Positions 15,561 to 64,000 of a DNA stretch of 64,000 nucleotides are shown here, one piece after another (position 1 is the stretch's first letter; each line of letters opens with the position of its first letter). The position numbers and the translations under genes are program-made. Source of the DNA: Basidiobolus meristosporus CBS 931.73. Taxonomy: Eukaryota; Fungi; Basidiobolomycota. The notes beneath the pieces are model-generated. The model was given only the letters and a program-made list of their open reading frames with translations. It had not been told where the DNA came from and did no database searches. Where the stretch lies: positions 1-64,000 of the forward strand of contig MCFE01000413.1 in assembly GCA_002104905.1 (NCBI GenBank). Direction: 5' to 3'.

Positions 15561-15589
15561 TTCATTAGGTCATTGTTTCTATCAAATTA

Positions 15590-15780
15590 GCCACGGCACC
15601 TAGACCTGAAGTAAAGCAAAAACTGGCACCACTTATGTCAAAGAAATAATGGAAACTTTATCAAAGGATGACTTCACTATCTAGACCACTCTGCCTTTGG
15701 CTTGTGTCATGCCACTATTACATTTCAGAGGATGGTCAATAATGTGTTAGAAATATGCAATGGCAATGCTCTCTTGTGTA
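15590..15780 (+). mobile_element. Small Ty3/gypsy reverse transcriptase fragment
   Basis: Frame AFGLCHATITFQRMVNNVLE matches the RT motif PFGL.NAP.TFQR.MN.VL. Confidence 0.6.
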
Positions 15781-15789
15781 TGAGGATTA

Positions 15790-16645: not shown

Positions 16646-19600
16646 TGTCAAAATATTGGACTATTTGGTATCATTCTGTAGCTGAAAATTTACTTAACAA
16701 TTCTGGATTAGTCTTGGTCACTGTGAGACTAATTTACAGCTCTAACTTTGCCACTCTCTTCAGATCTATGAACTTATGATTATTCTGTTGCAATTTAAGA
16801 AGTGATTTGGATATATAAGAACTTATCAAGAAATAGTGATAATAGTTGAACTGTTGTTTATTCATAAAAAAGCTCAGTATTTATACCTTTGTAGAAGTTA
16901 TAGAGCTGCAACACTAAGTAGGGAGGGTTTCTCAATATTCAGGAGCATTCTGTAACAGTTTCAGGGTTAGTACATAATGTTTGGTAATAGTGCTAATTTG
17001 ATCCTGACTATAGGGGAATAATAATAAGATCATATATCTGGAGAAAGTGGCAAAGTTAAGGCAGTAAATGAGTCCTAAAGTGACTAAGACTAGCCTAGAA
17101 TTGTTAAGTAAATTTTTAGCTGCTGAATGATACCAAATAGTCCAATATTTCAACACTCCCCCTCAACTAAATAATTTCTTAATCCCATTTTCTCTCTAAG
17201 AATCTCAAACTGTGGCCTAGCTAGTGGTTTTGTCAATATGTCTGCCACCATTTTGTCAGTTGGGCAGTAAACCAGCTCTACTAAGTTATTTTCTACAGCT
17301 TCCCTCACAAAGTGATGCTGTATATGAATGTGCTTAGTTCTGGCATGATTAGTAGGATTTCTAGCTAATGAAATACAACTTTGATTATCCTTGTAAATAC
17401 ATGTTGATTCACCTGAATTAAAACCTAAATCTTTGAATAATTTTCGTAGCCATAAAGCCTCCTTAGTTGCTTGACATGCAGCCATATATTTGGCATCAGT
17501 TGTAGATAGTGCCACAGTTGGTTGTTTCTTGCAATTCCAAGTAATAGCTGCACCAGCATAAAGAAATACATAGCCTGTGGTAGAGCGTCTGTCAATCAGA
17601 TCCCTACCCCAATCTGAATCACTATGACCATCAAATTTTTGCCTATTAGCTGCTCCAGAGTATTCCAGTACCATATTTATGGTACCTTGTAGATATCTGA
17701 AAATCCGCTTAACTGCTGCAATTAGATCTGATCCATAATTCTGCATGAATTGACTGACTATTCCAACTGCTACTGCAATATCTGGACATGTAGACACCAT
17801 CAAGTATATTAGGCTACCAACCATTGATTGATAGGGAAAGTTTGGTCCATATTTGAGCCGTTTTCATCTATAACTGGCTGAGATTTGCTTAATTTCAGGG
17901 TATTGTCCTTAGGGGTTGCTGCAGGCTTGCAATTTTCCATTTTGAAGCATCTAACAATGTCCCTGATGTACTTAGACTGATTCAGCACAATTTTCTGCGT
18001 AGGTATGTCAAATTTGACCTCAATTCCAAGAAAATAGCTCAATTTTCCAAGATCTTTCATCTCAAACTTGCTGAAGAGATCTGATTTCGTCTGTTTAAGT
18101 GCCTCTTGATCACTTGTAGCTATACTTAGGTTGTCCACATAAAGAACTAGGATGATCGCACCCTTTTTGAGCTGTTTCACATATATACTGTGATCTGCAG
18201 TGCTGTGAGAGACCCCAATTTCCTCTAGATATGTGTCAATATTGTTATACCATGCTCTGGGTGCCTGCTTAAGCCCATACAATGATTTTCTAAGTTTGTA
18301 CCCCTTATGGGGGTCTTTTGGATTGGTAAAGCCATCTGGTTGCTCCATATATATAGTTTCTTGCAAATCCCCATTTAGAAAGGCTGTTTTAACGTCCATT
18401 TGGTGTAGATCTAGACTGTGTACAGCTGCCAGGGCTAGAACTGTCATAATAGAGTTAAATTTGGCAACCGGAGCAAATGTTTCCTTAAAGTCTAGTCCCT
18501 GGATCTGGAAATAGCCTTTAGCTACTAATCTAGCCTTTTACTTATCAACGGCACCATTTGAGGTTATCTTGATCTTGTAGACCCATCTACATCCTATTGG
18601 CTTTCTCCCATTTGGTAAATCTACCAGTTCCCACGTTTTTGCCTTGATCAGTGATTGGTACTCCTCCTGCATGGCTTGTTGCCTCTTAGTAGCATCTGGA
18701 CCTTGCATTGCCTGTTCCAAATTCTGAGGTTTGGCACATAAGGCAAGATAAGCCTCTTCATGATCATTAGATGTCTGCCACCAGGATCCAGGGGCATTTC
18801 TTATTCTGGTAGATCTCCTAACTGGGATAATCTGTTCTGATCTGGAACTGGTAGAAGTATCTTCCATCTCAGGCTGGATTTGGTACGTATCTTCTTCATT
18901 TGTGTTGATTGCATCATCAGGCAGCTGGCCAATGATTTCTGTGGCTTTCTGATCTGAATTCTCCTCAAATACAACGTCCCTGCTCTTGATCAGCTTCTGA
19001 ATTTTGCCATCATACACTCTATACCCTTTAGTATCTTCACAATACCCAAGAAAGATCCCTTTTCTACTCTTTGGTTCCAACTTTGAGTGTTTTTTGTCAG
19101 GGATGTGATAAAAAACATCACTGCCAAAGATCCTGAGGTGCCGGAGATCTGGCTTTTTGCCTGTATATGCTTCAAAGGGTGTAGAATCATGTAGTGCTGT
19201 TGTTGGGCATCTGTTCATGATGTATACAGCAGTAGCAACAGATTCAGCCCAAAACTTGTAGTCCATTCCCTTATCATGTAGCATAGATCTTCCCATCTCT
19301 ACAATTGTCCTATTTGCACGTTCTGCTACTCCATTTTGCTGTGGAGTATAAGAACTGTGGTCTACTGAAGTATACCAGTAGACAAGCAGTACTTTGCAAA
19401 TTCCTTTGAGAAGTATTCTCCTCCATTGTCACTTTGTAGTACCTTCAATTTACACCCAGTTTGTGTTTCTGCCATGTTCTTGAAGTGCTTGAACATCTCT
19501 AAAGCTTCATCCTTTGTTTTGAGGAAGTACACCCATGTATATCTTGTCTTGTCATCAATAAACGTCATAAAGTATCTCTTGGCTCCAAAGGACAGTATTC

Positions 19601-46540: not shown

Positions 46541-48400
46541 ACTGCAAGGTCTACCACCTCATCTGCCAGTATTTGCAATAAATCTTTGCAATATTCAAGT
46601 GCATTTCTTGAGCACTGCTCTTGAAGAAGTGCTGCAACCTCTTGGTGTGCCTATTAACATTCCAAAACTCCATTGAAGGCATCAAGATAGTCTTTTGAGC
46701 TCTTGATGTTGTAGTCTTGCCTGTCAGTGGGATTTCCACTCTGTCACCAATGGAGGATGTGGAGGCTATGGTAGACAAATTGCCTTTTTCTGCAAACTCA
46801 TCTACCTGGCTGGAGTGTAGCTCAACTGGCTGCACATCCAACTCTTGTGAGAACAGCTGTTTTCTTGTTGGAAATTCTTGTGAGCTATGATGGGAATCAG
46901 TGTGTTCTGGGCTTGCATCATTGATTGGCCAGAACTGCAGTTTTTTGCATACCTCCCTGTCTCAGGCTTGGGTAGACATTTTTCCCTTTACCATTTCCTT
47001 TTTCTCTGCCAGGTCTTTCACTGCTACTCTGTCTGAGTGCTTCTTTTAATGAAATACATTTTCTCTTTGATATGTTCTGCTCTGATGCATCTGTTTTGGC
47101 CTGCTTGTCCCTTGCTGGCACTCTTCTGGCAACCTGATGTTTCTTTTCCGCTTGTTTTGAGCTCTCAACTATAGTTGTGACAGGCTCCTGTAAGAACCAC
47201 TGGTTTTTGTTGCTGCCAGGTCCTTCACTGATACTTTGACTGAATGCTTCTTGAGTAGTACTATGCTTTCTCCTTGATAAATGTTGTGCTGGTGCATCCA
47301 TGTCTCCCTGCTTGTCCCTAATTGGCACTCTTCTAGCTACCTGACATCTCATTGACACTTGTCTGGAGCTTTGGCCCTGCCTGTAACAGGCTCTTGTGGA
47401 GGTGACTGGTTTTTAACCATGGCACCCTTGTACTTCTGCCTTTGCTGGTTTCTGCTATTCTCAAGATACTCTCTTAGCACACCAATACTGCCCAAAATCC
47501 GTATGCCTGTTTGAATCCGGGATAATGCTCATGGAACAAGTCAAGTGCTTCTGCTTGGCCTTGAGTTCCTGATGGTCCCATGATATGCCAGCCTTGAGAT
47601 GATAGCATGCTAGACTTCTGACAGCCTCTTGAATATTAGCCTGCTCTTTATTGTTGCACTCAATGGCTGCACAGATCTTCAATATCTCTTGATCTTTATG
47701 CTTTGGTATAAACACCTCATTGTCCCCCTCCCACACTGTGATTAGTTTTGCTGTGGGCTTTATCTTTCAACACTATTGTTGTGCTTCAAAGACTGTACAA
47801 TGTTCCTCTGCTGTTACATTGGGAAATGACTCAATTCTTGGCTATGATATTGAGCTACTCAAGTTCCTTCTTTGCAGCAAAGATACTGCTTTCTCTAACT
47901 GGGATATTAATTGCTCTACACATATTATTCACTCATCCTGTTTCTGTACTATTTCCTGATTTATCTGGGCCAGCACATCTATCCCATCAGCCACTGCACC
48001 TGATTGCTTCATTAATGCTTTGGTATGAGTTGACAGCATACTTGGTAATATGGGTGGTAGTGGTGTTGTGATGGACACTTGCTGGTCTTCAACCAAGGGT
48101 ACTACATTTACTACATTCTCATCTGCCTGAGCATAGCCGTAAGCTTGTGGCTCTACAGCGGTTCTCAATTGCCTACTTGACTGAGAGCCTGACAAGTCTA
48201 CATTATTACCTTCAGTGGGCAAACTGTTAACATGGCCTTTTTTGGATGTAGTCCTGCTTATTGTACTGAATGTCAAAGCAAGCTGTTGTCCAACCATTCT
48301 TCTGTTGCTGTCAGTAGTGGGGTTTGGTTGGGAACCAGACAACTTTGCTTTATTTTTTGGCAGCATATGTATGAAAGTGAGTCAAACAAAGGGAAAGTAG
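46540..48400 (-). repeat. Family X repeat, longest copy (decayed ORF of roughly 600 codons here)
   Basis: ORF fragments 47929-48366, 47461-47736, 46918-47358 and 46551-46841 are consecutive on the minus strand and shared with the other copies. Confidence 0.75.
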
Positions 48401-48479
48401 TGTTACATATGCATGTGTATGTGGTGCCACAACTTTATTTATAATGCTTACTATGGTGGGTCATCATTGAATCTTACAT

Positions 48480-50315
48480 TCATGTAGGTGCAATGTCTCA
48501 AACACAAGACTGCCTTAAATTCACATGAGTATTGACCAAAAAGTGATATAATAGTGTTACATTGTTGAAGGTCAAATTGTTTGCCTCATGGTCAAGACTA
48601 CTTTGACTCTACACCATAAGAGAAGAGAAAAAAGCCATGTGGCTATTGTAGCAAGCCTCTCAGCCATGAAGCATGCAGACAGCATAGGAGTATTACAAGG
48701 ATCATGGGTGGTGTTCTGCCACACAACTCATATTTGACCATTCATTGGTCACTATCTTACCAATATTATCTTGTTGGCCAGTTAATACTTCTATATTGGC
48801 ACCCAGCTGTATTTGTCACCTTGCGCAAACTGAGTCAAATGAGTTTGTGATGTCTTTAGGCTCACCTCAGCCTTCTGAATATGGCACACAGAGTGATAGC
48901 TCTGACAAAGAAGGTTCACTGACAGATTGTGAGCCTATCTCCCTTAACAACAGTACAATGTATGAGCCTAGTCAAATCCCAATATTCAATGAGACAACAC
49001 CCATTGAGACAAATGCCAAGGATACATTATGGAGCCAAGTGAGCTCAGTAATCCATCTATTGGTGAGTGATGTAATGTTGTGGCTAGAGAAGTGGCACAT
49101 TTCTGCTAATATCAGTAATGGAGGCTTTTAGGATTTATCACTACTTCTTACTAAAATCATTCCTGGAAGCAACTTACTATGTACATGGTACAAGTGGACA
49201 ACCATTATGAGGCTGGCAACATATGATGCAGAGACTGTCCTGATTCCAGCATGCGTTAACAGTTGTATGGCGTTCACATCCAAAAATGCTACCATTGCAA
49301 CAAGTCCAAATTGTCAGGAATCCACCACCACTGAGGGAAAACATTGTTCACACTCCGGATACATTCCGGTCATACCCTGTCTGAGGAAGCTGATGTAGTC
49401 CAACAAATATTGCAAAGCTATACAGTACAGCACTCAGTATTAATCAAGCTCTAGCATATCCAATATAATTGATGGCAAACATTACAAACAGCTAAGAAGC
49501 AAGGGCTACTTTGAAGGTATGTATGGCCATGCCTTTGTCTTTGCACTTGATGGGGTCTCATTGAACAAGTACTCTACCAGTAAATCCTGCTGGCCATGGA
49601 TTCTCATCAATCTGATTCTGCTACCCATCTAACGGTACCAGAGCCATAATCTGATGGTAGTGTCACTGGTATCTAGCCCTAAATCACTGTCCAACCTGGA
49701 TAGATACCTGTATCCATTGCTGAATGGATTTATATGCTTTCCAGCAGGATAGCAGTAAATGGCCATCATGCAAAAGCGCATATTAGTATCTACATTGGAG
49801 ATACCCCAGCCATCAGCAACATAGCAGGTTTTTCTGGGCACATTGAGCTGTATTGTTGTCAGATGTGTGAGATCCATGGGATTTACTCCATAACTCTCAC
49901 ACATTATTATCACCCAAACACCAGCACTAAGAACATCATCTTCCCACAGAGAGAATGTACAGAAGTCAGCATGCAATTGCAGCAAAGTTGGCAAGCTATC
50001 AGCCATTGGCCAGAATATGGAATCAATTAGAAACCAGAGATACTTAAGATAGAGGATATCTGTTGGAGCAAAAGCTTTACACTGGGAGCAATGCATTTGC
50101 TTTTCAATAATATTTCTAAACTGATGACCAAGTTGTACATGGGGCATTTCAAGCTAAATGAGCCCTTTGAGATACCAGAGAAACTTGAAAAATTGGTAAG
50201 ATATTAAAGAGTATCTGCTACTCTAAGTACTTCTCACAGGCTCCAATCAATATTCATAAGCATATGCAACAACTCAAATGCAAAGACTGGATGACCTGGA
50301 TATGTATTTATTTAG
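48480..50315 (+). mobile_element. tnp2/CACTA(EnSpm)-type transposase remnant (copy 3, most complete)
   Basis: PCGYCSKPLSH N-terminal Cys/His motif, ACVNSCMAFT, SGYIPVIP.L, HAFVFALDG, IGDTPAISNIAGFSGH..YCCQMCEIHG, AMHLLFNNI, AKDWMTW; these resemble fungal Transposase_21 proteins. CACTA termini not found. Confidence 0.75.
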
Positions 50316-50319
50316 GAGG

Positions 50320-51752
50320 CATTCTGAAGATAAGTCAACTTGTATAGATTCCAATCTCTAATACCCAAAGCAATATGGGCACCATTTTGATCAGTAATCT
50401 TGCATTCAGAATTGTCAAAGCTGAAACTGAGTCCTTCTGCATTGGCCTTTCTTACCAAAAGTAGGTTCTTGGATATTTCTGATACATAGAGTACTTCTTT
50501 GTTGGTAAGTGTGTGGCTTCCTTCTCTGCTTCTATGGCTTACTAGGATAGTTCCTTCTCCCACTGCAACAAGCATTTGATTGTCACCCATGAAACCCTTC
50601 TCAACTGGAACTACTTGATGTTTGTAAAAAGAACTTTCTGGTGTGTAAAGTGTTGAGATACTCTCTAGACAGTATACCACTTCACAGAATTCCTGTTTGT
50701 GGTCATACTTAGTGCAGATATGAATAGTCTATCTTCAGTTGTTGCAGCATTGCCATACTTAGGTATCTTCTGCTTATATCTCTCTTTTGGTGGCACTTGT
50801 CTAATATGTGTCCTTTCTGTTTACAGTGGTAGCAAAACAGGTTGCTGTTGCCTTTAAAGGGTCCTGAGTATGTTCTTTGTTGGTTATCATTGCTTATTAA
50901 AGAATCCTCCCCTTCCTTCTTATTGGCACTTGATTCTACTCAGTAGCTGGTACACCTGCAGATTCCATCTCATTCTCCTGCAGGGTAATTTTGTAATTAG
51001 ATTTTTTATTTCATCTCCTGGCAGCATCTTTGTATTAAAGAAAAATTGTCTAAGATACATCTTCTTAGCAGCTGAAAATAACTGGTATGTATCTCTGATG
51101 CCTTCCAGGCATTCTTTGCCAGTTTTGCCCTTGAGAATTGAATTAGCAATTTGTCATTAATGTTGTGGCAATTGCTGTAAAAGGCACTTTATTCTTTTTG
51201 CAGTACTTTGAGGCCTTCTTTCCCATGTTCTGAGCAGGTCATTCTTCTCCCATGATGATATCCCAAAGGCCTCTTTTGTGCAGCAGCATCATCATCTTCA
51301 ACTTCCATATTTGATAGAGAGAATCTTCCCACTTTTCAGCGGAGGGAATAAATGCAGTAATAACAGTAGTAGACATAGCAGAGAGTACAGCTCTGGGCTT
51401 ATAACCTGTTGTAAGTGTCTTGGAGATACTGGAAGTGATATGATAGGATAAGTAGATTCTGTGGTTTTCACTGAATGATATATTGAATGTAAAGGTATCA
51501 TTTATATCACAACATTCTCTTGCAATAACAAACACACAGAATAAGCTTGGGAAGACCCCAAGAAAGTTTATACAAAGTTTGGGCCTGCTTAGAAAACCTT
51601 GTAAGTGTCATGTTTGAGTGCCTGATATTTGGGGAAAAAATCCAGGTGAATCCCAACATGGAATTTGGTCAGTTTTTCTCTAAGATTTGTAGGTAATGAT
51701 CTAAGTGACTAACTTAGGTGAGTACTTAGTTGGATTTACATGTGTTTACAAG
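50320..51752 (-). mobile_element. Copia family 2, 5' LTR (51407-51752) plus gag/protease, 3'-truncated
   Basis: PBS ggttataagccc next to the LTR; FIPSAEKWEDS.YQIWKLKM.MLL..RGLWDI gag start; protease-region homology to 3600-4050. Confidence 0.85.
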
Positions 51753-51759
51753 AGTAAAA

Positions 51760-54700
51760 AGGGTAAACAATTCAAACCAGCTGGCACTATGATGGCCTCA
51801 TTGCAGCATCTAGATGGCTGAATCAGATGAGGTCCACCCATGGGACCAAGCTATTTCCATAGGTATCTCTCTTTTGAGGGACTGGTGTGATCAGCTTCCT
51901 TTCCTATCACAGTAGACACACAAAAGGTTGCTTCTTTGATTTATAGTTCTTACAAGATATGTGGAACTTGGAATACAGATGATACTTTTGTGCACTTGGT
52001 TGCCCATGTACTAAAATAATTTAGAACTGCTAGGTCTTGAGTATTGTTGATATTCACCAGGAGCCTTACATGACCTAGTTTTGTTGTAAGTATTTGTAAT
52101 TTCATCTAAATATTCAAATAATGTAGTCACTCAGATCATTACTTTCAGATCCCAGAGAATACTGGCCATATTCCTTGTTGGGATTTACTTGAAATACTTT
52201 TGCCAAAGTATCAGGCACCCAGCAGATGAAGATTCTCAAAGTTGTCCAAATAGCTCCAGACTCTGCACACATGTTCTTGGGACCTTTTAAGCCTATTCTA
52301 TGCACTTCTTATGCCAAGACCATGTAAAATAAAAATACTACTTTTACATTCAATAAGTCATTAAGTGAGAACCACATAATCACGTATCCTCCCAATCACT
52401 TCCAATAGCTCTAAGTCTCTTACCACAGGTTATGACCACAAAGCTCTTACTCTCTGCAATGTTTACTTTTGCTATTACTGAAGCTTTTCCCTCTGCTGAA
52501 TGGTGGGATGGATCTAACTACCAAATGTGGAAGGTGAAGATGAAGATGCTGCTGCAAGAAAGAGGCCTTTGTGATATTGACATGAGAGAAAAATACCCTC
52601 CCAACAATGTAGTAGAGGAATCCTTGGAGTATCAGGAGTAAGAACAAGTGCCTTTGATGGCATTTGCCTCAATGGAAAAGAATGTATGGAAGGCATCAGA
52701 AGAGCCATACTGGTCATCTTCAGCTGCTAAGGGAATGTTTCTTGGATAAAGTTTTTTTCATACAAAGATGCTGCCAGGAGGATAAGAATAAATCTTGATA
52801 ACACAGTTACCTTGCTGGTGTACAAGATGGATTCTATGGGTGTACCAGCCACTGAGATGTATGTGAAAGTAGCCATCCTGAATAGCCTGAGAGACAGGTT
52901 TCAGGGCCTTGTATCAGCCCTAGAGTCCAGAACTGAAGATTTCACCTTAAATTGCATATATAGAAGGCCCCTGGATGAAGAATCAAGTCATTCACGGACC
53001 AAATAAGAAGGAAGAAGAAAATGCTTTAGGCAAGTATAGGGCACTTGATGCAGTGGGAGAAGCAATTATTCAAGTAAATCTTCAAAGCAGTGAAGGAAGC
53101 CATACTTTTACCTTCCAAGAAGCTCACTCTGGACCAGAAATAGCCAAGAACCTATTATATATTAGGAAGGCTACTGTTTAAGGACTCAGTTTCAGCTTTG
53201 ACAATTCTGGATGCAGAATCACTGATCAATATGGTGCCAATGTTGCCTTGGGTATCAAAAACCAGAATCTTTACAAGTTGACTTATATTCCTTCATACCT
53301 GTAAGCCCATATTAGTAGCTTAAATGCCGAAGCATTGATGTTTTGGCGCAGAATACTTGGACACATCAGTTTTAATTATTTTTGCAAAATGATCCAGGAT
53401 CAATTAGTTTCCAGAGTACAGTTGATTGTCCAGTTAATTGGGAGCACTATAAAGCCTAGATACATAGAAAACATGCCAGACAACTTTCCAAGAGCTCTGG
53501 GCCAATTAAAACTGAGAAAAAACTAGATCTAATTCACTCTGATCTGTGTGGCCCTATGCATAAGTTATCCTTAGGTGAAATGAAGTATTGAATCACTTTT
53601 ATTGATGACTATACAAGAAACATGGAGGCCCACTTCATGGAGAAAAATGAAGAAGCTCTGTCTAAGTCTAGGGAGCTTAAAGCCATGGTGGAAAGAGAAA
53701 CTAGTGAAAAAATCATGAAAATATGCTGACAGCAGTGGGGAATATACCCCAAAACCCCTCATCCATTACTGCAAAATTCACAGGATAAAGCAAGAAATTA
53801 ATCAATCATACTCCCCATAGTAAAATGAAGTAGCAGAGCAAGTCAAAAGATCAATAATAGATATAGCAAGATCTATGATGCATGATCAAAAATTATCCTA
53901 TGATATTTTTGTGGATCCAGTTGCAACAGGTGTATACCATAGAATATGAGTTATAACAGAATATTTTGTGATTCTACTCCATTTGAAGCATGGTATGGAT
54001 GCACACCAAGTGCAGGACATCTCAGAATACTTAGGTGTACCACACATGCCCAGATATCAGTCAAACTTTGAGCCAAAAAGTGTAAATGCAATAAAGCATG
54101 CAGACTCTGCAATACCAAGGCAAAGAAGCAAATCAAGTCCAGAGATGTGTTGCTTGATGAAAGTTCAAAATTGCAACATAAAATGACAACAGATGATGAC
54201 AAAATCTGATTCTAAGTCCACCAAATGTCAGGATTAAATCAGAGCAAAACAATGAAAAGTTTTTCACTCCAGAGCACTCTGCAACCATGGTTCATCCTAA
54301 AGCAGCACCCAGGAATATCCCAAAAGTGAATATTCCAGTATCAAATTCCCAGGGATCCAACAGGACAAGAAATAGCCCAAATTATTACATCAGTGAGGGT
54401 ACAAATTTAGCCTATGCCTATTTAGTCCATATTGATGAACCCCATACTGTAAAAGAGACCATAGATAGCCCTCAGACAAAGCTTTGGAGATCTGCCATGA
54501 CTGAGGAATATCAGGCCCTGATGGAAAATCAAACTTGGAACTTGGTTGAATTACCAATCAACCAAAAATCAATTGAGTGCAGAGGGGTCTTTTAGACAAA
54601 ATACTAGGCTGATGGTACAACTGAAAGATTCAAAGCAAGACTTGTGGCCAAAGAATACTCTCAAACAGAAGGACTTGACTATACTGAGGCCTTTGTACTG

Positions 54701-57108
54701 GTAGCCAAGTTTAATTCCATCAGATTAATGTTGGCTATTGTGGCCAAATATAAGTTTTTTATTTATCAAATGGATATAAAAACTGCATTTTTGAATGGAA
54801 AACTAGATGAGTACATGTATATGGACCAGCCTGATGGATTTGCTGACCAAGATTACCCCCATTGTCTGCAAGCTTGAAAAGTCTCTATATGGACTCAAAC
54901 AATGACCACTAGCCTGGAATTGCAAAATAGATTCTTATTTGAAATCTTTGAGTCTCAAAGGAGTAATGCTGACTATAGTTTTTACTATAAGCTAGATAGA
55001 GCAAGTCCAGTTCTATTAGCTCTTGATGTGAATGATCCTATTATAGCCACCAATAACCTAGAAACACTGGAAAAGACTAAATCCAGCCAATCTAAAGAGT
55101 TTGAGATGTCCAATCTAGGAGAAGTTGGTTGCTACTTAGGGATAGAGTTCTCCATAAATAGTAGTACCCAAACTATCACCCTAAGCCAATCCAAGTATAT
55201 TTGAGATATACTGAAGAAGTACCAGATGGCAGACTGTAAACCAGCAGCTACCCCAATGGAGACAAACCTTAACTTGGTCAAAGCTCAACCAAATCAAGTG
55301 GGCTTGGTGTTGTCTGAAAGCCCTGAGTTTTCTAATAAATCTATGGTCAGCAGACTGATGTATATCATGCTTGGAACATGTCCAGATATCTCATATTCAG
55401 AGTGAGTTGTCAGCCAGCAAAATCAGAACTATGGATTTGATCTTATTGTAGCAGTTAAGTGTATTTTTAAATACCTAAGAGAAACTGCTGATATCTGCTT
55501 AGGGTACACCTATAAGGATTCAGAACAAGATCTTGCAGGATACTCTGATGCTGATTGGGGACAAAATTTAGAAGATGGAAGATCCACCACTGGATACACC
55601 TTTCTTTACCCTGAAAGAGCAATTTCATGGAATTCAAGGGAGCAACCAACTGTAGCACTTTCTACCACAGAGACAGAGTAATATGACAGTCTGTGAAGCT
55701 ACAAAAGAAGCAATGTGGTTAAGGAAGCTTTTTAGAGAATTAGGCTTATGTTAAAAAATGCTTATTACTTTATTTCAAGATGAACAAGGATGTATATAGT
55801 TAGGTAGAAATCCAACTTTTCATGCTAGAACTAAGCACATATATATTATACACCATTTCATATGTGAAGCTATAGAGGATAACCTGTTTGACTTAGCTTA
55901 CTGTCCCACAGATGAAATGATTGCAGGTATACTCAGCAAACCATTAGCTAGAGACAAGTTTGAATATCATAGGTCAAAATTAGGACTAGTCAGTATGAAC
56001 ATTTAGTTGAGTGGCTGTGTTGTAAGAGCTTGCAATTTCACCTAAATATTCAGCTAGCCTAGTCACTTAGATCATTACCTTCAGATCCTAGAGAATACTG
56101 ACCAAATCCCTGGTTGGGATTCATTCAGAATATATTCACCAAAATATCAGGTACCCAGAGCATGAAAATTCACCTAGTTGTCCAAACACCCCCAGGCTTT
56201 GCAAGCATGTACTTGGGACATTCCTAAACCAATACTGCATGTTTGTTATGCCAAGACCATGTAAAAGTATAAATACTAATTTTACACTCAATAAATCATT
56301 AAGTGAAAACCACATAGTCTGACAGTCCTCCTAATCACCTCCAATTTCTCCAAGTCTCTTACAGCAAGTTTGAAGTCTCATTTACAGTTCTGTGCTCTAC
56401 AGCTGCTACAAGGCCCTGAGACTCATCTTTCAGGCAATTTTGCAGGGCATCAATGATTTTTATATCATCTCCTTGCACTTCAGCTGATTTAATCTTGTCA
56501 AGCTGGATAGTAACTCTGCTAACCAGATTTTGCATCACTTTGCCTGCCAGTACTTAGTAGTGAGGAGTTCCTGCTTCAGATATACTTTGAGAGGGCACTC
56601 ATCTCCAATGATGACATCAGCAAGGCTATTTTCTTGCAGCATTGACTTCATCTTTGTCTTCCCCATAGGGTAGTTAGATCCATCCATGTTCTCAGTGGGT
56701 AGGAAAATTCCAGAAATGGTAGTAATGGACATCTCAGCAAGTGACAGCTTAATTCTCATAACTTGTTGTGGGAGTTTTGAAGTTACTGGAAGTGACCAGG
56801 AGCACAAACTCTTTATATTGCTTTCACTCAATTGTTTATTGAATGGGAAGTAGTGTTTGTGATTTTACATGATGGTGGTGGGACAACCATTTGGAGCTTA
56901 CCCACAATGGACCCATGAGCACCTGTTCAAGAGTTTGAGGTAGCTTGGACAGCACTGAGACTTCATCCTGTCCTGGCCATGTGATATATTGGTGGGATAT
57001 TCTATGAAAATTCCAACAAAGAGTTTGGGCAGAATTCTCAATGATTTGTAGTCTATTTTCCAAGTGACTAAGTTGGGTGAATATTTGGGTGTGAGTACAG
57101 CATCTACA
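51760..57108 (-). mobile_element. Old copia family 2 element (5' LTR ~56766-57108, gag), split by element C
   Basis: LTR tgttgtgggag...ctacaaca with a ctcataac PBS remnant; gag FLPTENMDGSNYPMGKTKMKSML; gag-like sequence continues on both sides of the 52082-56366 insertion. Confidence 0.6.
52082..56366 (+). mobile_element. Copia family 2, element C, both LTRs (52082-52427 and 56018-56366), TSD AGTTT, heavily degenerate gag-pol
   Basis: agttt|tgttgtaag ... ttacagca|agttt; PBS-like ggttatgacc at 52428; FPSAEWWDGSNYQMWKVKMK gag, AKEYSQ.EGLDY, MDIKTAFLNG RT, RNase H remnants; the two LTRs are visibly much more diverged than those of element B. Confidence 0.9.
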
Positions 57109-57189
57109 ACATGTATCTCATATACAATGATGGAAATGTGGAGAGATGGATACTTGCTGGATGCAGGCCTGGTTGGGGTGGTTTGAGAG

Positions 57190-57300
57190 ATTTTGAGAGG
57201 TTTGGTCACCACTGGCATTTCCACTGCCACCAAAAATTGCAGAGTGTCATTATGGAAGCACATGATGCTGGTCATTATCAAGCACACATCAGAGTAAAAT
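57190..57300 (+). mobile_element. Gypsy integrase zinc-binding fragment
   Basis: KLQSVIMEAHDAGH resembles the integrase H2C2 motif IL.EAHD..GH. Confidence 0.4.
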
Positions 57301-57379
57301 CACCCATCATAGGAACAAACAAGATGTAGTCTAAAATGATACCATGCAGGATAGTGAGGATATGTGGCTTAGTCACTTA

Positions 57380-57927
57380 CAGACCATGTCACCGGCGGGG
57401 ATGCCATAGCAATACATTTGGAATCCATGGGGGAGGGGTGTGACATCGAAGTGCCCTGCGTGCTCTAACAGGAGGTGGGTAGACCAAGCCAGCTGATGCA
57501 TGTGGGCGGGTCTGGGGATGACAGGGCTGGGGAGCGTGCAAGAGTGGAGCTAACCGCAGACCCTGGCCGGCAACCCAAATCGGGGGTCTATCCAGATGGA
57601 GGCCGGATTGCGGAAGGGCCGAGATCGTGATCACGATCGCGACCTTGATCTTGACCATTCTAAGGTGAACCGTAGGCTACGGATTAGTCAGGGATTTGAG
57701 TTGTCAGGAGTGAGGTTCGTGGGCCACTTATCGGCCACATCCCTCTCCCACCAATTCCCTCCCTAATCAACCAGGCTCCAAGAGGATTCCCCACCGCCTT
57801 CTCTTTTCGCCCTACACGCTTAGTTTGTACATTACCTAATCCACGCCAAGCGGTGACGATTCCCCCTACCTCTTCCATCTTGGTCTTAACGTAGCTTGTC
57901 AGTTCTCCACCACCTCACACATACACT

Positions 57928-57959
<32 letters not shown>

Positions 57960-58010
57960 AACACAAACACACAAACCCCTTCTACCCCCGCCTAACCATA
58001 TTCCCTTGCG
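57380..58010 (+). promoter_or_regulatory. CpG-rich upstream region (probable promoter/5' UTR of the GHKL-DUF3684 gene)
   Basis: CpG reappears abruptly near 57390; pyrimidine-rich tracts and an AC-rich repeat lie just before the ATG. Function is inferred from position only. Confidence 0.5.
57914..57974. repeat. Imperfect (ACACAT)n/(AC)n microsatellite
   Basis: tcacacatacacttacacatacacatacacatacacacacacaaacacaaacacacaaa. Confidence 0.9.
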
Positions 58011-61000
58011 ATGGACCTAGACCTATCGGCGTTCAAGTCCTTGGTCATCCACGACTCCGCTGCGGAAGAGCGGGTCCAGGTGAACCAACGCCATCTGATC
58101 GACAAGATCCTGGCCAGATACTCGGCCCCGTTCACCATCTATCGGGAGTTACTTCAGAACGCCAATGATGCCGGGGCGACGGAGGCGAAGATCCACTTCC
58201 GGACCAAAACCCCCGACGACGCCCAGTCGAACCCCAACCCTAACCCCAACCCCAAACCAAAACCCTTCACCAAGGAGTTCTTCCGAACTAACTCCTCCGA
58301 GCCGAAGGAGAGCAACCCCACCTCCTTCGACCCGAACGCCTCCTGCCACACCGTGCTCTTCCAGAACAACGGTCGCCCCTTCCAGCCGGAGGACTGGAAC
58401 CGACTGAAGAAGATCGCGGAGGGGAACCCGGACGAGCAGAAGATCGGGTTCTTCGGGGTGGGCTTCTACAGTCTGTTCTCCATCTGCGAGGAGCCGTTCG
58501 TGGTGTCGGACCAGGAGTGCATGGCGTTCTTCTGGAAGGGAGACCAGTTGTACACGAAGCGGCTGGCGGTCCCGGAGCCCATGAGGCAGCTCGGTGGGTG
58601 GACCACGTTCTCGTTGGACCTCCGGGAGCCGGTGACCGTGCCGGAGGTCGAGGAGTTCGGCCGGTTCCTGGCGTGCTCGATCGCGTTCACCCAGAACCTG
58701 CGCTCGGTGTCGCTGTACCTGGACGACCAGCTGCTGGTGAAGGTGAGCAAGAAGGTGTCGGAGCCGAACCCGCTCTCCTGCACCCACCCCACCGGACAGC
58801 GCCTCACGAACGAGGCTTGCCAGTCGCTGCACACCCGGTCGCCCCACGGGGTGTTCCAGCTGAGCGCGGTGTACGGGCTCCAGGTGCAAATCGACGCCGA
58901 GTACCTCAAGTGCACCAAGACCAGCGGGATGTTCTGGAGTTCGGGGCCGAAATTCAGCCGCATCAGCTCCACCCTCTTCCTCAAGATCGCCCAGGCCCAC
59001 CTGACCACCCACGTCACGCCCGCGTTCGCGGACCAGATGGAGAGGACGACGAAGAAGTCCCCGCCCAAGACCACCCTCGTCCAGATGATCTACACCGGGC
59101 TCGAGGAGTACGAGGCGTCGATCAGCGTGCACCAGGACTTCCCCATCTTCCGGGACCTGCTCCCGTACCCCCACCAGGGGAAGGTGTTCATCGGGTTCCC
59201 CACCCACCAGACCACCGGGTGCTCCGTCCATCTCGCCGCCCACCTGATCCCCACCGTGGAGCGGGAGTCGATCGACTTCGTGGACCCCCACCTCGCCCGC
59301 TGGAACCAGGAGATGCTCAGCATGTGCGCGCTGCTGGCCCGGGTCCTCTACGACGAGGAGATCGCCGACATCTCCCAGCGGTACCTCCGCCTCGTGGACG
59401 GCCCCAAGCCCAAAGAGGGCAGCCCCAGCGGGGAGCCGGATCCGGCGATGACGTGGCTCGAGCGACGCTGCATCCACGCCATGACCTCCTTCTGCTTCCA
59501 CCCGGCCACGCCGATCAAGACGGTGGGGAAGCTGATGGAGAAGTGTTTCTTCGCCAGCGGGAAGGTCCCCCCGGGACTCCTCTCCTCGTGCGGCGTGAAG
59601 CCGTGTGACCAGGTGCGGCTCCCGGACCCGGAGCTCGTCCCCTTCCTTCGCACGACCCCCTACCTTCCGTCCAAGATTCAGAAAGAGGCTGGCGAGATGC
59701 TGAGCAGCCTGCAGGAGCGCTACCACCTGGTCAAGGTTGGCCTCCCCGATCTGATCCGGGACGTGAGTGGATATGCGATCACGGTAGATCAGGCGGTAGC
59801 TCTCCTACGCTGGTGGCTCGGGTTCAAGGAATCCCAAGGTCGCGGCCACCTTCCCCCGGAGCATGGGCAGCAGTTGTTGCGGGCCATCACCCTTCTGAAC
59901 CCGTTGCCCAGCTTCTCGCTGGGCAGCCCGGAGATCGGGGCCAAGGACGCGGTCGGGCCCACCATGCCGGTCGCGTTGGCGGAGTTCCGCTACTTCCTGA
60001 ACCCCAAGGTGGTCCACCAGGGTCTGCCGGTCCCCCAGGAGACCCTCCCGTTCGAACTCACCCGGCATTTCAACCAGCGGGAGCTGCGAGAGGCGTTCGG
60101 CACGTGGAAGGAGCTGACGCTCGCCATCTGGACGGAGCACGTCGTGCAGCAACACCGCTCGGAGCTCACCACCTCCCCGGTCTTCTCCGAGAAGATCCAC
60201 CATGTGCTCTACCGTGGGTTCTACCAGCAATCGCCGAACGACCGGGCCCTGATGCTTAGCCTGCTGGAGGGGGTGGCGTGCATCCCCACCCAGCTAGGCC
60301 AGCGCCTCCCCAAGGAGACCTACTTCAAGAACGTGAAACTCTTCTCCGACCTGCCCATCGTCCAGCTGGCCAAGTTCCCGAGCGGCATGGAGCGATTCCT
60401 CGGGGACCTAGGCGTGCGCACCCACGTGGACCTGCAGCTGGTCTTCGACCGTCTGGAGCATCTCAACTGGGACTTCATGAAGCTTCTCAAATACCTCGCC
60501 TCCGTGAAATCCCAGCTCTCGGAGGCGGAGATGGAGAAGCTGAGCCAGACCCCGCTCTTCCCCGCCCGGAGCCTCATCCGGCCAAAGCCCCACCAAAGCA
60601 CCGAGCGCCAAGAGCCAGGAGCCCAGCCCGCCGCCGGCTCGATTCAAGGCCAGCGAGCTGTACGCCCCGGTCGAACCCCTGTCCAACCTTGGGCTACCGG
60701 TGATCGCGTGGCCCGACAAGTGGCGCGACTCGTCGGAGGAGGCGAAGTTCCTTCAGAGGTTGGGTCTGAGAACCAACCCGCCGCTGGACAGGCTCATGCT
60801 GATCGCGGCAACCGCGGAATCCCCGGAAACCCGGATGAATGCGTTGAGATTCTTCATCGAGCACTTGCCTCCCACTACCAGTGGGTGTACCGTCGGGAGG
60901 AGATCCAGATCCCCTTGATTCCCTGCACCCGCCTTAGCCCCCGGCCGGGGACTGGGGACTCGATGGCGAAGGGGGCCACCCTGGGCGATCAGTTCACGAA

Positions 61001-63674
61001 GACGGAGGCGATGGCGAAACCTACGGAATGCTACGCCAACCCCGCCTCCGAGGTGATGGGATTCAAGATAGTGCATCCGGAGCTGCGACGGGACGCGGAG
61101 AAATTCGGGATCCTGGAGCAGCCACCGGTGGCCGCGCTCATCACCTTCCTGCAGGCAAGCCCGCCCGGACATCCGACCTACGGCAGATGGGTGTTCGAGT
61201 ACCTGGCCAGCCGACAGGCGGACTTTACCTCGGCCGATTGGGAGAAGCTTCGGTTCCTAAAGTTCATCCCTGTCCAGAGCAGCAACGAGACCCCGGTTTA
61301 CTGGATGGCCCCGGGCGAATGCTATTTCATCAACGACACGGTCGACTTCAAGTACGACTTCTTCACCTACATCCACTTCGGCCCGATCGCCAACCTGTTC
61401 CTGAAAGCGTGCGGCGTCCAAGAGGAGCCATCCCCAGTCGACCTGGCCCGCATCATCACGAAAGACCCTCCGAAGTTCCTCGAGGCCTGTCAGCGAAACC
61501 CGGCCCACACCTCGGGCCAAGCCTCTCGTGACCACGGATACGAGCATTACCTGCAAGTGCTGCGACAGTTGGCCATCCAGATGCCGACGTTGTCCCGGCA
61601 CTCTGACATCATGAGGGCCATGAGGAGTCGACCCTTCCTGATCGCGGTCCGGGAGAAAGGCGGCCAGTCGATGGCGGAGAAGAAGAGCGACCAACACCCG
61701 ATGGACGTATCGGAAGCCTCGGTGCTGGAGTATCGCCTAGAATCCCCGGGCAACATCTGTCTGGTGGACGACACGGTCCTCCAGAAGACATTCAACCCGT
61801 GGTACGCGCCGATGGAGACGTTACTGGAGACGTTCTACGAGCAGCTGGGCAGCACCTGGATATCGAAGCAAGTGACCGAGTCTTCCCGGCCAACGGGGGC
61901 GATCACCCAGAGTGGCCGATCCCAAGCTTTGCAGAATCTGATCCGAGAGCGTGCCCCGCTGCTGATCTACGACTACCAACGAGAACAGTCCACGAAAGTG
62001 CTCCGCTCCAGCGAGTGGTTGGCCACGAAACTGCGGGTGCTTGAGGTGGATCAGATCCACATCCACCGCAAGTTCCTCCCCACCCACCAGGTCCACACCG
62101 AAGCCACTACCGCCTGCTTGGAGCGGGGGCTACGCGGGGTGGACGCGCCGAGGGACGCCGTGTTCCTCCTGATCTCCCGTCAGGACTACAACGAGTTCGA
62201 CATTGCCACCTGTCTATGCAAGATCCTTTTCTCCAAATCCCGGCTGAACGACGCGCTGCTACTCGAGACCCTACTCTCCACCAGCTTGCAGCACCTGAAG
62301 CGCAAAGGTTTCCCTGTCGATCGAATCCTCAACCACCAGAAGGCGGTGACCCCGGCGGCAACGCCGAAACCCGTTGAGCCCGCTCCACCCCGGTCCTCCA
62401 CCCCGCCGAAGGGATCACCGGCCAGTGACCAGCCACCACCTTACGAGCCCAAGGGCCCGACGCAACCCGCACCGCTACCCGCCCACCTGAATCCCTACTT
62501 CAGCCAGCTTCAAGCCATGTTCCCGGATTGCGATCCGAATTACCTGAAGTCCTGCCTGTTGGAGGAGAAACGGGATCACGTTGCCCGAGTGAGCAACCGG
62601 CTGCTGGACGACACGTACCCTCGCCTCCCCAACCACACCACGCAGAAGGAACGAACAGCCGTGGGTGGCAAGCAGCCCGCTCCCCAGCCACCGGCCACCA
62701 CACCGCCCACCCCCGTCCCCACCTCGTCAAATCTGATGGACAGGCTTAGCCGTCGCTTCCAGAGCGGGATCAACGATTGGTACAAGAGCTACGACAAGCC
62801 ATCCGGCCCGTCCACCACGACGATCGACGATTCCGAGAGCAAGCATCAGCCGATCCCTGGTGGGTTCCCCAGCCTTCCCCGACCTCCCAAGAGCCAGAGC
62901 CAGAGCTCGAGCTCGAGCCCGAACCCGAGCCAGCCCGGCGGGGAGCCGGTGAACACGGTCGGACCCGACCACACGGAGCTGCTGCAACGATCGCTGAAAT
63001 CCTCGGTGGATTCGTGTGTTCGTAACGTCAACGCCTTCGACGGTCGCGAGCCGGAGAAGGCGGCCACCCCACCCCCGCCGAAGGACTACACCGGGGAGGC
63101 CCACCACCATTACTGCAGCGTGATCCCACCGCAGAAACTCGCTCATTGCGCGCGAATCGGTCAGTTCGACCTCTACCTTGAGACCGGGATGGCCTCCAGC
63201 GAGTTGTTCGCGTGCGATCTGGCCGGGCAAAGCGTCCCCTTGGTGCAGTTCGATCGGCTGACCGGCTCACTCACCGCCCCCGACGGTAGCACCATGGCGC
63301 CGGGAAGTAATCTGCACTCGCTGCACCTGATGGGCCACACGTTGACCACTCTAGTCCAGGTGTTCCAGCTGAACCCCGCTTCGGTGCACCTCTACTACGA
63401 CCGGGAGGGGCCCACCGTAGCATTCAATCGGGGCCGCTCGCTCTTCTTCAACCTACGGTACTTCCTGCTCCTCCATCACCCCCGGATGGCGGTGTCCCCG
63501 ACGGAGGCGGCCGACGTTCACTTCTACTGGTTCATGGTCGCCTGCCACGAGCTCGCCCACAACTTCGTCTCCGATCACAACGCTCAGCACGAGTTCTACC
63601 TGTCGTCGTTTGCGGAGCAGTATCTCGGCCCCTTGGTCCGCTCCCTCCTCCGAATGGGAAAGGTGAGCGCGTGA
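58011..63674 (+). CDS. Large protein (~1887 aa): sacsin-like GHKL (Hsp90-fold) ATPase, DUF3684-like region, CUE motif, C-terminal HExxH zinc-metalloprotease motif; apparently intronless; internal compensating frameshift pair at ~60567 and ~60866
   Basis: ERVQVNQRHLIDKILARYS..FTIYRELLQNANDA, NNGRPF..EDWNRLKKIAEGNPDEQKIGFFGVGFYSLF, GKVFIGFPTHQTTG...HLAAHLIPTVERESIDF, LQAMFPDCDP..L......V....LL (62496-62612), CHELAHN (63543-63563); strong GC3 bias in this frame. The family assignment is from recalled motifs. Confidence 0.9.
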   Translation: MDLDLSAFKSLVIHDSAAEERVQVNQRHLIDKILARYSAPFTIYRELLQNANDAGATEAKIHFRTKTPDDAQSNPNPNPNPKPKPFTKEFFRTNSSEPKESNPTSFDPNASCHTVLFQNNGRPFQPEDWNRLKKIAEGNPDEQKIGFFGVGFYSLFSICEEPFVVSDQECMAFFWKGDQLYTKRLAVPEPMRQLGGWTTFSLDLREPVTVPEVEEFGRFLACSIAFTQNLRSVSLYLDDQLLVKVSKKVSEPNPLSCTHPTGQRLTNEACQSLHTRSPHGVFQLSAVYGLQVQIDAEYLKCTKTSGMFWSSGPKFSRISSTLFLKIAQAHLTTHVTPAFADQMERTTKKSPPKTTLVQMIYTGLEEYEASISVHQDFPIFRDLLPYPHQGKVFIGFPTHQTTGCSVHLAAHLIPTVERESIDFVDPHLARWNQEMLSMCALLARVLYDEEIADISQRYLRLVDGPKPKEGSPSGEPDPAMTWLERRCIHAMTSFCFHPATPIKTVGKLMEKCFFASGKVPPGLLSSCGVKPCDQVRLPDPELVPFLRTTPYLPSKIQKEAGEMLSSLQERYHLVKVGLPDLIRDVSGYAITVDQAVALLRWWLGFKESQGRGHLPPEHGQQLLRAITLLNPLPSFSLGSPEIGAKDAVGPTMPVALAEFRYFLNPKVVHQGLPVPQETLPFELTRHFNQRELREAFGTWKELTLAIWTEHVVQQHRSELTTSPVFSEKIHHVLYRGFYQQSPNDRALMLSLLEGVACIPTQLGQRLPKETYFKNVKLFSDLPIVQLAKFPSGMERFLGDLGVRTHVDLQLVFDRLEHLNWDFMKLLKYLASVKSQLSEAEMEKLSQTPLFPARSLIRPKPHQSTERQEPGAQPAAGSIQGQRAVRPGRTPVQPWATGDRVARQVARLVGGGEVPSEVGSENQPAAGQAHADRGNRGIPGNPDECVEILHRALASHYQWVYRREEIQIPLIPCTRLSPRPGTGDSMAKGATLGDQFTKTEAMAKPTECYANPASEVMGFKIVHPELRRDAEKFGILEQPPVAALITFLQASPPGHPTYGRWVFEYLASRQADFTSADWEKLRFLKFIPVQSSNETPVYWMAPGECYFINDTVDFKYDFFTYIHFGPIANLFLKACGVQEEPSPVDLARIITKDPPKFLEACQRNPAHTSGQASRDHGYEHYLQVLRQLAIQMPTLSRHSDIMRAMRSRPFLIAVREKGGQSMAEKKSDQHPMDVSEASVLEYRLESPGNICLVDDTVLQKTFNPWYAPMETLLETFYEQLGSTWISKQVTESSRPTGAITQSGRSQALQNLIRERAPLLIYDYQREQSTKVLRSSEWLATKLRVLEVDQIHIHRKFLPTHQVHTEATTACLERGLRGVDAPRDAVFLLISRQDYNEFDIATCLCKILFSKSRLNDALLLETLLSTSLQHLKRKGFPVDRILNHQKAVTPAATPKPVEPAPPRSSTPPKGSPASDQPPPYEPKGPTQPAPLPAHLNPYFSQLQAMFPDCDPNYLKSCLLEEKRDHVARVSNRLLDDTYPRLPNHTTQKERTAVGGKQPAPQPPATTPPTPVPTSSNLMDRLSRRFQSGINDWYKSYDKPSGPSTTTIDDSESKHQPIPGGFPSLPRPPKSQSQSSSSSPNPSQPGGEPVNTVGPDHTELLQRSLKSSVDSCVRNVNAFDGREPEKAATPPPPKDYTGEAHHHYCSVIPPQKLAHCARIGQFDLYLETGMASSELFACDLAGQSVPLVQFDRLTGSLTAPDGSTMAPGSNLHSLHLMGHTLTTLVQVFQLNPASVHLYYDREGPTVAFNRGRSLFFNLRYFLLLHHPRMAVSPTEAADVHFYWFMVACHELAHNFVSDHNAQHEFYLSSFAEQYLGPLVRSLLRMGKVSA

Positions 63675-63791
63675 ACACCATCGCCGCCTCAGTAGTCACT
63701 CCTCTCCCCTCACCGCCCCCCCCCTACCATTTACCCAACTCATACACCCGTCCACTAATGTTTATACCCCGATCCCCGCCGTAAGATCCGA

Positions 63792-63797
63792 AATAAA
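63792..63797 (+). promoter_or_regulatory. Possible polyadenylation signal AATAAA
   Basis: AATAAA ~120 bp after the stop codon, in otherwise GC-rich sequence. Confidence 0.3.
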
Positions 63798-64000
63798 TCA
63801 CTTGATGCGCTTAAAACCCCAACGCTGCGGTCCATATTTTGGCAGTTTCCCCATGCCCCTCCGAGCCAATACCGCATCTTGAGTTTCCACTTGACTGACA
63901 GCCAGATTGGAGATTACTCATTGACGGTTCGGTTTGCTAGTCAATCCGGGCTCCTTCGAGTCAGTGAGGCTCCAGAAATTGTTTGCTTTTTCAGTCTGGT

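Follow-up and report, generated by a model that had tools for sequence, protein, structure and literature searches.

A fungal protein family joining a sacsin-type GHKL ATPase, a CUE domain and a Wss1-like zincin, with a GC-rich member gene in Basidiobolus meristosporus

Among the proteins in which an Hsp90-like GHKL ATPase is followed by a DUF3684 region is Tiamat of Bacillus cereus, described in an October 2026 preprint as an ATPase combined with a single-strand DNase and as a relative of NO VEIN and sacsin; NO VEIN is nuclear, and relatives of Tiamat cut DNA (bioRxiv 10.64898/2026.09.30.754977). The same work resolves DUF3684 into TPR-like folds, a "Fold B" and a Wss1-like metalloprotease fold devoid of the catalytic motif, notes that, according to InterPro, ATPase-DUF3684 proteins often carry a terminal metallopeptidase domain, and describes the Tiamat superfamily as one that swaps its effectors, peptidases among them (bioRxiv 10.64898/2026.09.30.754977). 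Two further systems are close: sacsin, built of three repeat regions together with DnaJ and HEPN domains and, at its N-terminus, a ubiquitin-like domain, and the Wss1/SPRTN proteases. In this work, we describe a gene related to all of them, located at positions 58011-63674 of a window of 64,000 nucleotides of the fungus Basidiobolus meristosporus CBS 931.73 (contig MCFE01000413.1, positions 1 to 64,000, forward strand).

The segment is a true protein-coding gene and belongs to a large, conserved family, whose members feature, in this order, a sacsin/Tiamat-type GHKL ATPase, a DUF3684 core, a Pro/Ser linker, a CUE domain, a second linker and a zincin with a Wss1-type HExxHx5H motif (coordinates in Table 1). 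The three modules are real, two low-complexity linkers connect them, and conservation extends to the residues of motifs I and III as well as to the catalytic ones of the zincin. An initial annotation had proposed the combination of a GHKL ATPase, a CUE domain and a Wss1-like protease in one polypeptide: all the motifs it named were found in place upon translation of the open reading frame (ORF), and they exceed chance, being conserved among homologs (the zinc motif in 105 of 120, its H/E/H/H/H residues in 50 sequences, and the hydrophobic-F-P and LL positions of the CUE in about 47 of 49 rows). The closest database match of the window ORF in a protein search is the deposited B. meristosporus CBS 931.73 protein K493DRAFT_272766 (P0001, 1847 aa), which served as the in-frame version of the protein.

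Assignment of the N-terminus to the sacsin-type GHKL ATPases holds by several models. Pfam SACS (PF25794) scores 54.5 bits on the window ORF (cut-off 32.8, E 2e-14) and 64.9 bits on the deposited protein, and NCBIfam NF047352 (P_loop_sacsin) reaches 56.7 bits against a cut-off of 50 (E 2.4e-15). The nearest solved structures are those of sacsin Sr1 (5v44-5v47, E ~1e-10; 1.2e-10 for 5v44), followed among PDB sequences by the N-domains of Hsp90, Grp94, HtpG and TRAP1; when a full-length profile was searched against PDB sequences, sacsin and Hsp90 were the only proteins among the 60 matches listed. Across 50 sequences, conservation reaches at least 90% at the Glu, Asn and Asp of motif I and in the GxxGxG motif. 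Motif II reads Asn-Asn-Gly, not the canonical Asp-x-Gly-x-Gly, and aligns with the Asn-Asn of sacsin, which places the domain in the sacsin subtype of GHKL ATPases. The label of a DUF3684-type protein is borne out as well: PF12449 scores 750.8 bits, in three stretches, on the window ORF, and 860.3 bits on the deposited protein, where it spans aa 290-1280 (model positions 135-1098).

The segment between the two Pro/Ser-rich linkers, earlier described as CUE-like on account of its MFP and di-Leu motifs, is indeed recognized by Pfam CUE (PF02845) when the 74-aa segment is scanned alone (22.1 bits, cut-off 21.1). In a 50-row alignment, the Phe is found in 47 rows and the Pro in 35, while the two di-Leu positions are kept in 36 and 30. 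The AlphaFold2 model contains three helices, spanning residues 15-27, 33-42 and 47-57 in segment numbering, with block-mean values of the predicted local distance difference test (pLDDT) of 81-89: the segment is thus predicted to be structured, besides being conserved. The best Foldseek matches of this model are the CUE domains of CUEDC1, gp78/AMFR, Tollip and SMARCAD1. The sole match among PDB sequences, not significant, is the CUE domain of Vps9.

From its model and its sequence, the C-terminal domain is predicted to be a WLM-like zincin with an intact catalytic motif. AlphaFold2 models aa 1647-1887 with a mean pLDDT of 88.5 and a predicted template modelling score of 0.86 (ORF numbering corresponds to the position in the modelled fragment plus 1646). 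The leading Foldseek matches in PDB are all zinc peptidases, namely selecase, Wss1, M1 aminopeptidases and ZmpB. Since none of them reached E<=0.001, the model was also compared by VIA-align, a Foldseek-independent structure search, with 48,161 chains. Wss1 took the first two ranks: the S. cerevisiae protein (5xbn) with Z 6.1 and a root-mean-square deviation (rmsd) of 3.3 Å over 111 of 128 residues, and the S. pombe protein (5ln5) with Z 5.9 and 2.6 Å over 95 of 113. The next match has Z 4.8, and SPRTN has Z 4.2.

Conservation singles out the same site. In 50 aligned sequences the invariant columns are C1702, A1804, F1805, Y1839, W1840, H1846, E1847, H1850, H1856 and H1860, so that the putative zinc-binding His residues, the third included, and the Glu are found in every row. 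The motif H[ED]xxHx5H occurs within the last 150 residues of 105 out of 120 homologs; at least 6 of the remaining 15 are annotated as partial, and several are shorter than the others. A feature search of the ESM Atlas with the domain returned viral clusters and one rotifer DUF3684 cluster, and was uninformative. The earlier identification of a Wss1/WLM-like HExxH domain can thus be retained for the zincin fold, for Wss1 as the nearest structure and for the invariant motif; membership in the WLM family itself cannot, and we speak of a WLM-like domain because the Pfam WLM threshold was not reached and HMMER searches against PDB sequences were empty.

A word-based search retrieved 538 full-length relatives at E<=0.001. 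The best 120 of them come from the early-diverging fungal lineages covered, namely chytrids, Blastocladiomycota, Neocallimastigomycota, Monoblepharidomycetes, Zoopagomycota, Glomeromycotina, Mortierellomycotina and Mucoromycotina, along with the amoebozoan Planoprotostelium; Mucor, Rhizopus, Phycomyces, Mortierella, Spizellomyces and Batrachochytrium all have members. None from Dikarya is among the matches listed, which does not by itself demonstrate absence. An exhaustive hidden Markov model search with a profile of the zincin domain yielded 934 cluster representatives, 582 of which at E<=1e-10. In most of the 150 profile matches listed the zincin lies at or near the C-terminus, and the short ones that were sampled are fragments of the same architecture, with the tail of DUF3684 and/or the CUE domain preceding the zincin. 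In one long exception the zincin is fused to alcohol-dehydrogenase domains, probably by a merged gene model. A length-restricted search for stand-alone zincins found 5 short proteins, all of them apparent fragments; together with the shared architecture of the sampled matches, this indicates that the domain is essentially confined to this type of protein. As a separate observation, Glomeromycotina (Rhizophagus and others; proteins P0263-P0285) feature a large expansion of paralogs, some of which, 2000-2900 aa long, contain additional Pfam domains (PF08825, PF03196, PF04769, PF06369).

UniProt already names members of the family "CUE domain-containing protein" or "Sacsin/Nov domain-containing protein". 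The architecture is therefore catalogued in databases, yet it is unstudied and is not described in the literature searched. Searches for sacsin with WLM, and for sacsin with CUE domain and fungal, returned nothing relevant, and for DUF3684 only the Tiamat preprint was found, which gives no function for this combination. Among its "Tiamat-like" types I-XI there is no fungal type with a CUE domain and a zincin, and the word CUE is absent from it (bioRxiv 10.64898/2026.09.30.754977). The earlier remark that no function had been described for these domains together agrees with the outcome of these searches.

Comparison with the closest systems highlights both shared and distinctive features. With Tiamat and NO VEIN the fungal protein shares the GHKL ATPase and the DUF3684 core, and the PADLOC models of the Tiamat protein TmtA match its first ~400 residues (aa 45-413, best E 2.8e-19); C-terminal effector swapping and the recurrence of a Wss1-like fold are further points of likeness with the superfamily. 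In contrast, no Pfam match to the PD-(D/E)xK domain (NOV_C/DUF3883) was found on either the window ORF or the deposited protein, the C-terminus being a zincin instead; the catalytic motif of the Wss1-like domain is complete, and long linkers, with the CUE domain between them, connect this domain to the rest of the protein. Type V-A, the Tiamat-like type with a peptidase, occurs in bacteria and has a Schlafen-like domain in addition, unlike the architecture found here.

With Wss1 and SPRTN the likeness lies in the zincin fold, in a zinc site HELxHNxxxxH of identical spacing, in Wss1 providing the best two structural matches, and in the principle of linking a protease with an ATPase and with an element that binds ubiquitin or SUMO. 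The fungal domain, however, goes unrecognized as WLM both in Pfam and in HMMER searches of PDB sequences; it has additional elements on its N-terminal side, besides an invariant Cys and one more invariant His, the fourth, and is not known to depend on DNA. Its ATPase is of the GHKL type and lies in cis, whereas Wss1 and SPRTN rely on the AAA+ protein Cdc48/p97 in trans; its predicted ubiquitin reader is a CUE domain, while theirs are SIM, UBZ, SHP or VIM motifs. Sacsin, finally, has the same N-terminal Hsp90-like subtype, including the Asn-Asn of motif II, and likewise joins an ATPase to an element of the ubiquitin system within a very large protein. The fungal protein differs from it by having a single ATPase, a CUE domain and a zincin, with no Pfam match to DnaJ or HEPN on the window ORF or the deposited protein.

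On these analogies, the family may consist of ubiquitin-guided ATPase-proteases contained in one chain, a reading to which we give an even chance. On the model of the dimers of Hsp90, MutL, MORC and Tiamat, the N-terminal GHKL part would act as an ATP-driven clamp or a machine resembling a chaperone; the tethered CUE domain would recruit ubiquitylated clients to this machine, and the zincin, on the second tether, would cut the clients or something bound to them. A single chain would then do what Wss1 and SPRTN do with a separate Cdc48/p97 and with SUMO- and ubiquitin-binding motifs. Clients might be DNA-bound adducts or misfolded cytosolic proteins.

Several observations weigh against this reading. 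At the zincin, Foldseek E-values against PDB range from 0.03 to 0.5; the Z of about 6 with Wss1 falls in the range that VIA-align itself terms ambiguous, the comfort level of the tool being Z 8; Pfam WLM (PF08325) scores 14.1 bits against a cut-off of 26, over just 18 residues around the motif; and neither phmmer nor hmmsearch with a 6-sequence profile matched the domain to any PDB sequence. The CUE domain is borderline (15.8 bits) when scanned within the full-length protein, and its Foldseek matches, several of which superpose with an rmsd of 1.6-2.1 Å over 43-47 columns, have E>1, as is to be expected of so small a domain (~45 residues). The Asn of motif II occupies the position of the adenine-binding Asp of Hsp90 (Asp79-equivalent), and the D79N mutant of yeast Hsp90 does not bind ATP; sacsin has the same Asn, and ATP binding is therefore not certain. 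No biochemical or genetic work on any member of the family was found in the literature searched. Moreover, a pair of +1/-1 frameshifts scrambles about 96 core residues in the window copy.

The latter point bears on the copy rather than on the family. Nucleotide comparison identifies the window locus as a second copy, distinct from the deposited locus of K493DRAFT_272766 (sister locus L001, MCFE01000001.1:169305-194974): the block 57214-64000 is 99.3% identical in the two, and the flanks 92-96%. At the base level, two single-base indels set the window apart, one C more at 60578 and one T fewer at 60864, each in a short homopolymer run. The window ORF and the deposited protein align identically save for two excised stretches, one frame-shifted segment and few substitutions; at aa ~857-954 of the ORF agreement is lost altogether, because the deposited protein maps there to frame +1 (60580-60864). 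The ORF remains open across the shifted segment because GC-rich sequence has few stop codons. In the sister locus an ORF of 1889 codons runs uninterrupted. The claim of one polypeptide is accordingly borne out by the single ORF of 1887 codons, with the correction that this ORF does not give the true protein at 60579-60865. The initial annotation did not bring out these frameshift details, nor the foreign composition of the gene or its affinity to Dimargaritales, both described below.

The window copy might accordingly be a decaying duplicate, or its frameshifts assembly errors, so that the 1887-aa ORF as read would not be the functional product. We regard this as a tentative alternative, short of an even chance: both indels fall in homopolymer runs while the sister copy is intact, and the window ORF scores 110 bits lower than the deposited protein for DUF3684, because a segment of its core is out of frame. 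Against this, the frame is regained after 286 nt and all three terminal domains are in frame; furthermore, the other coding differences between the copies, 9 synonymous and 4 non-synonymous, suggest purifying selection. As to the two stretches excised in the deposited gene model, removal of the first, at 58224-58313, gives back the loop length usual for the family, and within its 90 nt the two copies differ by 4 substitutions and a 6-nt indel; the second, at 61488-61523, is very short and doubtful as an intron.

A more specific use of the same modules would be as a DNA-protein crosslink protease, with GHKL-DUF3684 clamping DNA, the CUE domain recognizing the ubiquitin attached to an adduct, and the Wss1-like domain breaking that adduct down. 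This would be a special case of the ubiquitin-guided ATPase-protease, with a defined substrate, and we consider it unlikely. The clamp has analogues in MutL, MORC, GyrB and Tiamat; the nearest structures of the zincin, Wss1, are crosslink-repair proteases, with SPRTN also among the matches; and the DNA-cutting relatives of TmtA/Tiamat and the nuclear NO VEIN point in the same direction (bioRxiv 10.64898/2026.09.30.754977). However, scans of the window ORF and of the deposited protein revealed neither a DNA-binding or nuclease domain nor a nuclear localisation signal, and likeness of fold reveals no substrate. Sacsin, the other close relative, is a cytoplasmic protein, which also counts against a role at DNA.

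It is comparably improbable that the family is a conflict or immune module, that is, a Tiamat-like sensor whose nuclease was swapped for a protease, directed against mycoviruses, mycoparasites or non-self instead of serving a housekeeping role. The match of the TmtA models to the window ORF would fit, as would the effector swapping, peptidases included, documented in the superfamily (bioRxiv 10.64898/2026.09.30.754977), the many Rhizophagus paralogs, some with extra domains, and the position of a window copy that appears horizontally acquired and sits among transposons. In contrast, most lineages have one well-conserved copy, the tree follows the species phylogeny, conservation is very high along the whole protein, unlike that of fast-evolving sensors, and the peptidase type V-A of the preprint is bacterial and differently built. 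Hardly to be expected is that the zincin is a non-catalytic binding module (a pseudo-protease or a metal-dependent adaptor), as proposed for the Wss1-like fold in Tiamat cores: inactive Wss1-like folds are reported in this superfamily (bioRxiv 10.64898/2026.09.30.754977) and WLM membership was not attained, but all 50 sequences, from fungal lineages and an amoebozoan, have the HExxH with its catalytic Glu as well as the third His, and such invariance, the opposite of the motif loss in Tiamat, makes a non-catalytic role unlikely.

The ubiquitin-guided ATPase-protease remains the reading we prefer. A wider version of it, of which we are doubtful as a whole, would regard the family as a eukaryotic, Tiamat-related "clamp protease", in which an ATP-gated GHKL dimer would capture ubiquitin-marked targets and cleave them at an active Wss1-type zinc site, the catalytically dead Wss1-like fold of the Tiamat and NO VEIN cores would be a degenerate relative of this domain, and the gene would be mobile between fungi, having moved in this case into Basidiobolus from a Dimargaritales-like donor. 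If so, mobility of the gene would be as expected for a stand-alone conflict or repair module.

The B. meristosporus gene is conspicuous for its base composition. Inside the gene GC content is 0.60-0.67, compared with 0.36-0.43 across the other 57 kb of the window; the ORF has GC 0.63 and GC at third codon positions (GC3) of 0.84, and the remaining window GC 0.39. The gene thus forms a 6.8-kb single-gene island in transposon-rich DNA. In the sister locus, too, high GC does not extend beyond the gene, which is bordered left and right by AT-rich repeat DNA. Given these borders, and since two diverged contigs share the junctions, a chimeric assembly or a contaminant is unlikely to underlie the jump in GC.

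In a maximum-likelihood tree of 39 sequences, sampled outside Entomophthoromycotina, the family largely tracks fungal phylogeny. The B. meristosporus protein, however, nests within Dimargaritales (Tieghemiomyces, Dispira, Dimargaris), with a value of 100 in the Shimodaira-Hasegawa-like approximate likelihood ratio test (SH-aLRT), which suggests a fungus-to-fungus transfer. Its BLASTP identity with the Tieghemiomyces protein is 53% (60% when counted on aligned tree columns), compared with 31-42% for matches outside Dimargaritales. An approximately unbiased test (16 rows, LG+G4) rejects a Kickxellomycotina excluding the B. meristosporus protein (delta log-likelihood 142.6, p 2.9e-7), for a group that was set after seeing the tree. 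The deposited protein and the three Dimargaritales rows are among those flagged in the tree set for deviant amino-acid composition.

The Tieghemiomyces gene is intron-less and has GC 0.64 and GC3 0.74, whereas B. meristosporus genes of fungal origin have a mean GC of 0.49 and a median of two introns (PMC7466969). Taken together, the tree, the match in GC and introns with Tieghemiomyces and the GC island are most simply read as a recent transfer, and suggest that the gene was acquired from a Dimargaritales-like fungus. The family gene of B. ranarum (L003, JASJQH010007729.1) has GC ~0.42 and introns of ~970 nt. Its protein (P0008) is 62-65% identical to most Mortierellomycotina members (56-65% overall) and ~40-45% identical to those of other lineages, and groups with Mortierellomycotina (SH-aLRT 100); this affinity could be due to a second transfer or to a contaminant contig, or be a true one. 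No protein of B. meristosporus resembling P0008 is among the matches listed.

Divergence between the two B. meristosporus copies drops from 4-8% in the flank (window 47354-56683) to 0.7% exactly at the edge of the island (57214-64000); the 530 nt in between (56684-57213) are found only in the window and not in the sister locus. The jump in identity might stem from gene conversion, from the island having spread later, or from mutation rates that differ. Hypermutation of the flanks resembling repeat-induced point mutation was rejected, as the substitutions are symmetric, with no excess of C-to-T. A dispersed repeat of ~250 nt lies on both sides of the island (8624-8838, 16200-16464, inverted, and 16639-16852 of the sister locus) and has 8 copies in the window, for example at 4352-4635, 5565-5868 and 56074-56345. 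It had been considered as the boundary of a mobile element carrying the island, a candidate rejected because the repeat is dispersed: with 8 copies in the window, its placing beside the island is probably due to chance, and it probably represents a small family of transposable elements rather than the limit of a mobile unit. The remainder of the window (1-57000) contains 11 ORFs of at least 200 aa and numerous repeated segments.

Table 1. Features of the island and of the GHKL-DUF3684-CUE-zincin gene in the window (positions in nucleotides of the window; aa, residues of the window ORF)
Feature	Position	Strand	Basis
GC-rich island, block of 99.3% identity common to the window and the sister locus (9212-15998 there)	57214..64000		GC, comparison
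ORF, 1887 codons + stop, GHKL-DUF3684-CUE-zincin gene	58011..63674	+	ORF listing and translation
Sacsin-type GHKL (Hsp90-like) ATPase domain	58011..58760	+	Pfam SACS, NCBIfam P_loop_sacsin, PDB sacsin Sr1, Hsp90 N-domains, PADLOC TmtA
Motif I, ELLQNANDA, aa 46-54	58146-58172	+	translation
Putative intron of the deposited model, in frame, GT..CTAAC..AG, Pro/Asn-rich if translated	58224..58313	+	deposited model
Motif II, NNG, aa 119-121	58365-58373	+	translation
Motif III, IGFFGVGF, aa 145-152	58443-58466	+	translation
DUF3684 core, limits approximate	58965..61970	+	Pfam PF12449
Out-of-frame segment; conserved peptide in frame +1 at 60580-60864	60579..60865	+	comparison with the deposited protein (P0001) and the sister locus (L001)
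Second putative intron of the deposited model, in frame, ~33-36 nt	61488..61523	+	deposited model
Pro/Ser-rich linkers around the CUE domain	~62343-62480 and ~62613-62960	+	sequence
CUE domain, three predicted helices	62481..62612	+	Pfam, conservation, AlphaFold2, Foldseek
MFP, aa 1503-1505	62517-62525	+	translation
LL (aa 1531-1532) within NRLLDD	62595-62612	+	translation
C-terminal WLM-like zincin domain (predicted)	62961..63671	+	AlphaFold2, VIA-align, conserved columns, profile search
YCSV with invariant Cys	63111-63122	+	alignment
HELAH, start of HELAHNFVSDH (aa 1846-1856; 63546-63578)	63546-63560	+	translation
Third His (H1856)	63576-63578	+	translation
Fourth invariant His (H1860)	63588-63590	+	translation

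For B. meristosporus, the locus is a clean candidate for gene transfer from fungus to fungus, in a genome whose known acquisitions are so far mainly bacterial (PMC7466969). For the family, its meaning lies in the way the modules are combined: Wss1 and SPRTN proteases depend on separate ATPases and on separate ubiquitin or SUMO readers, while the fungal proteins combine in one chain a sacsin-type ATPase, a predicted ubiquitin reader and a Wss1-like protease that looks active. Sacsin and NO VEIN are GHKL proteins relevant to disease and development; the fungal family offers a genetically tractable entry to the way this GHKL branch engages its substrates, and may also reveal the past role of the metalloprotease-like fold in Tiamat-type proteins.

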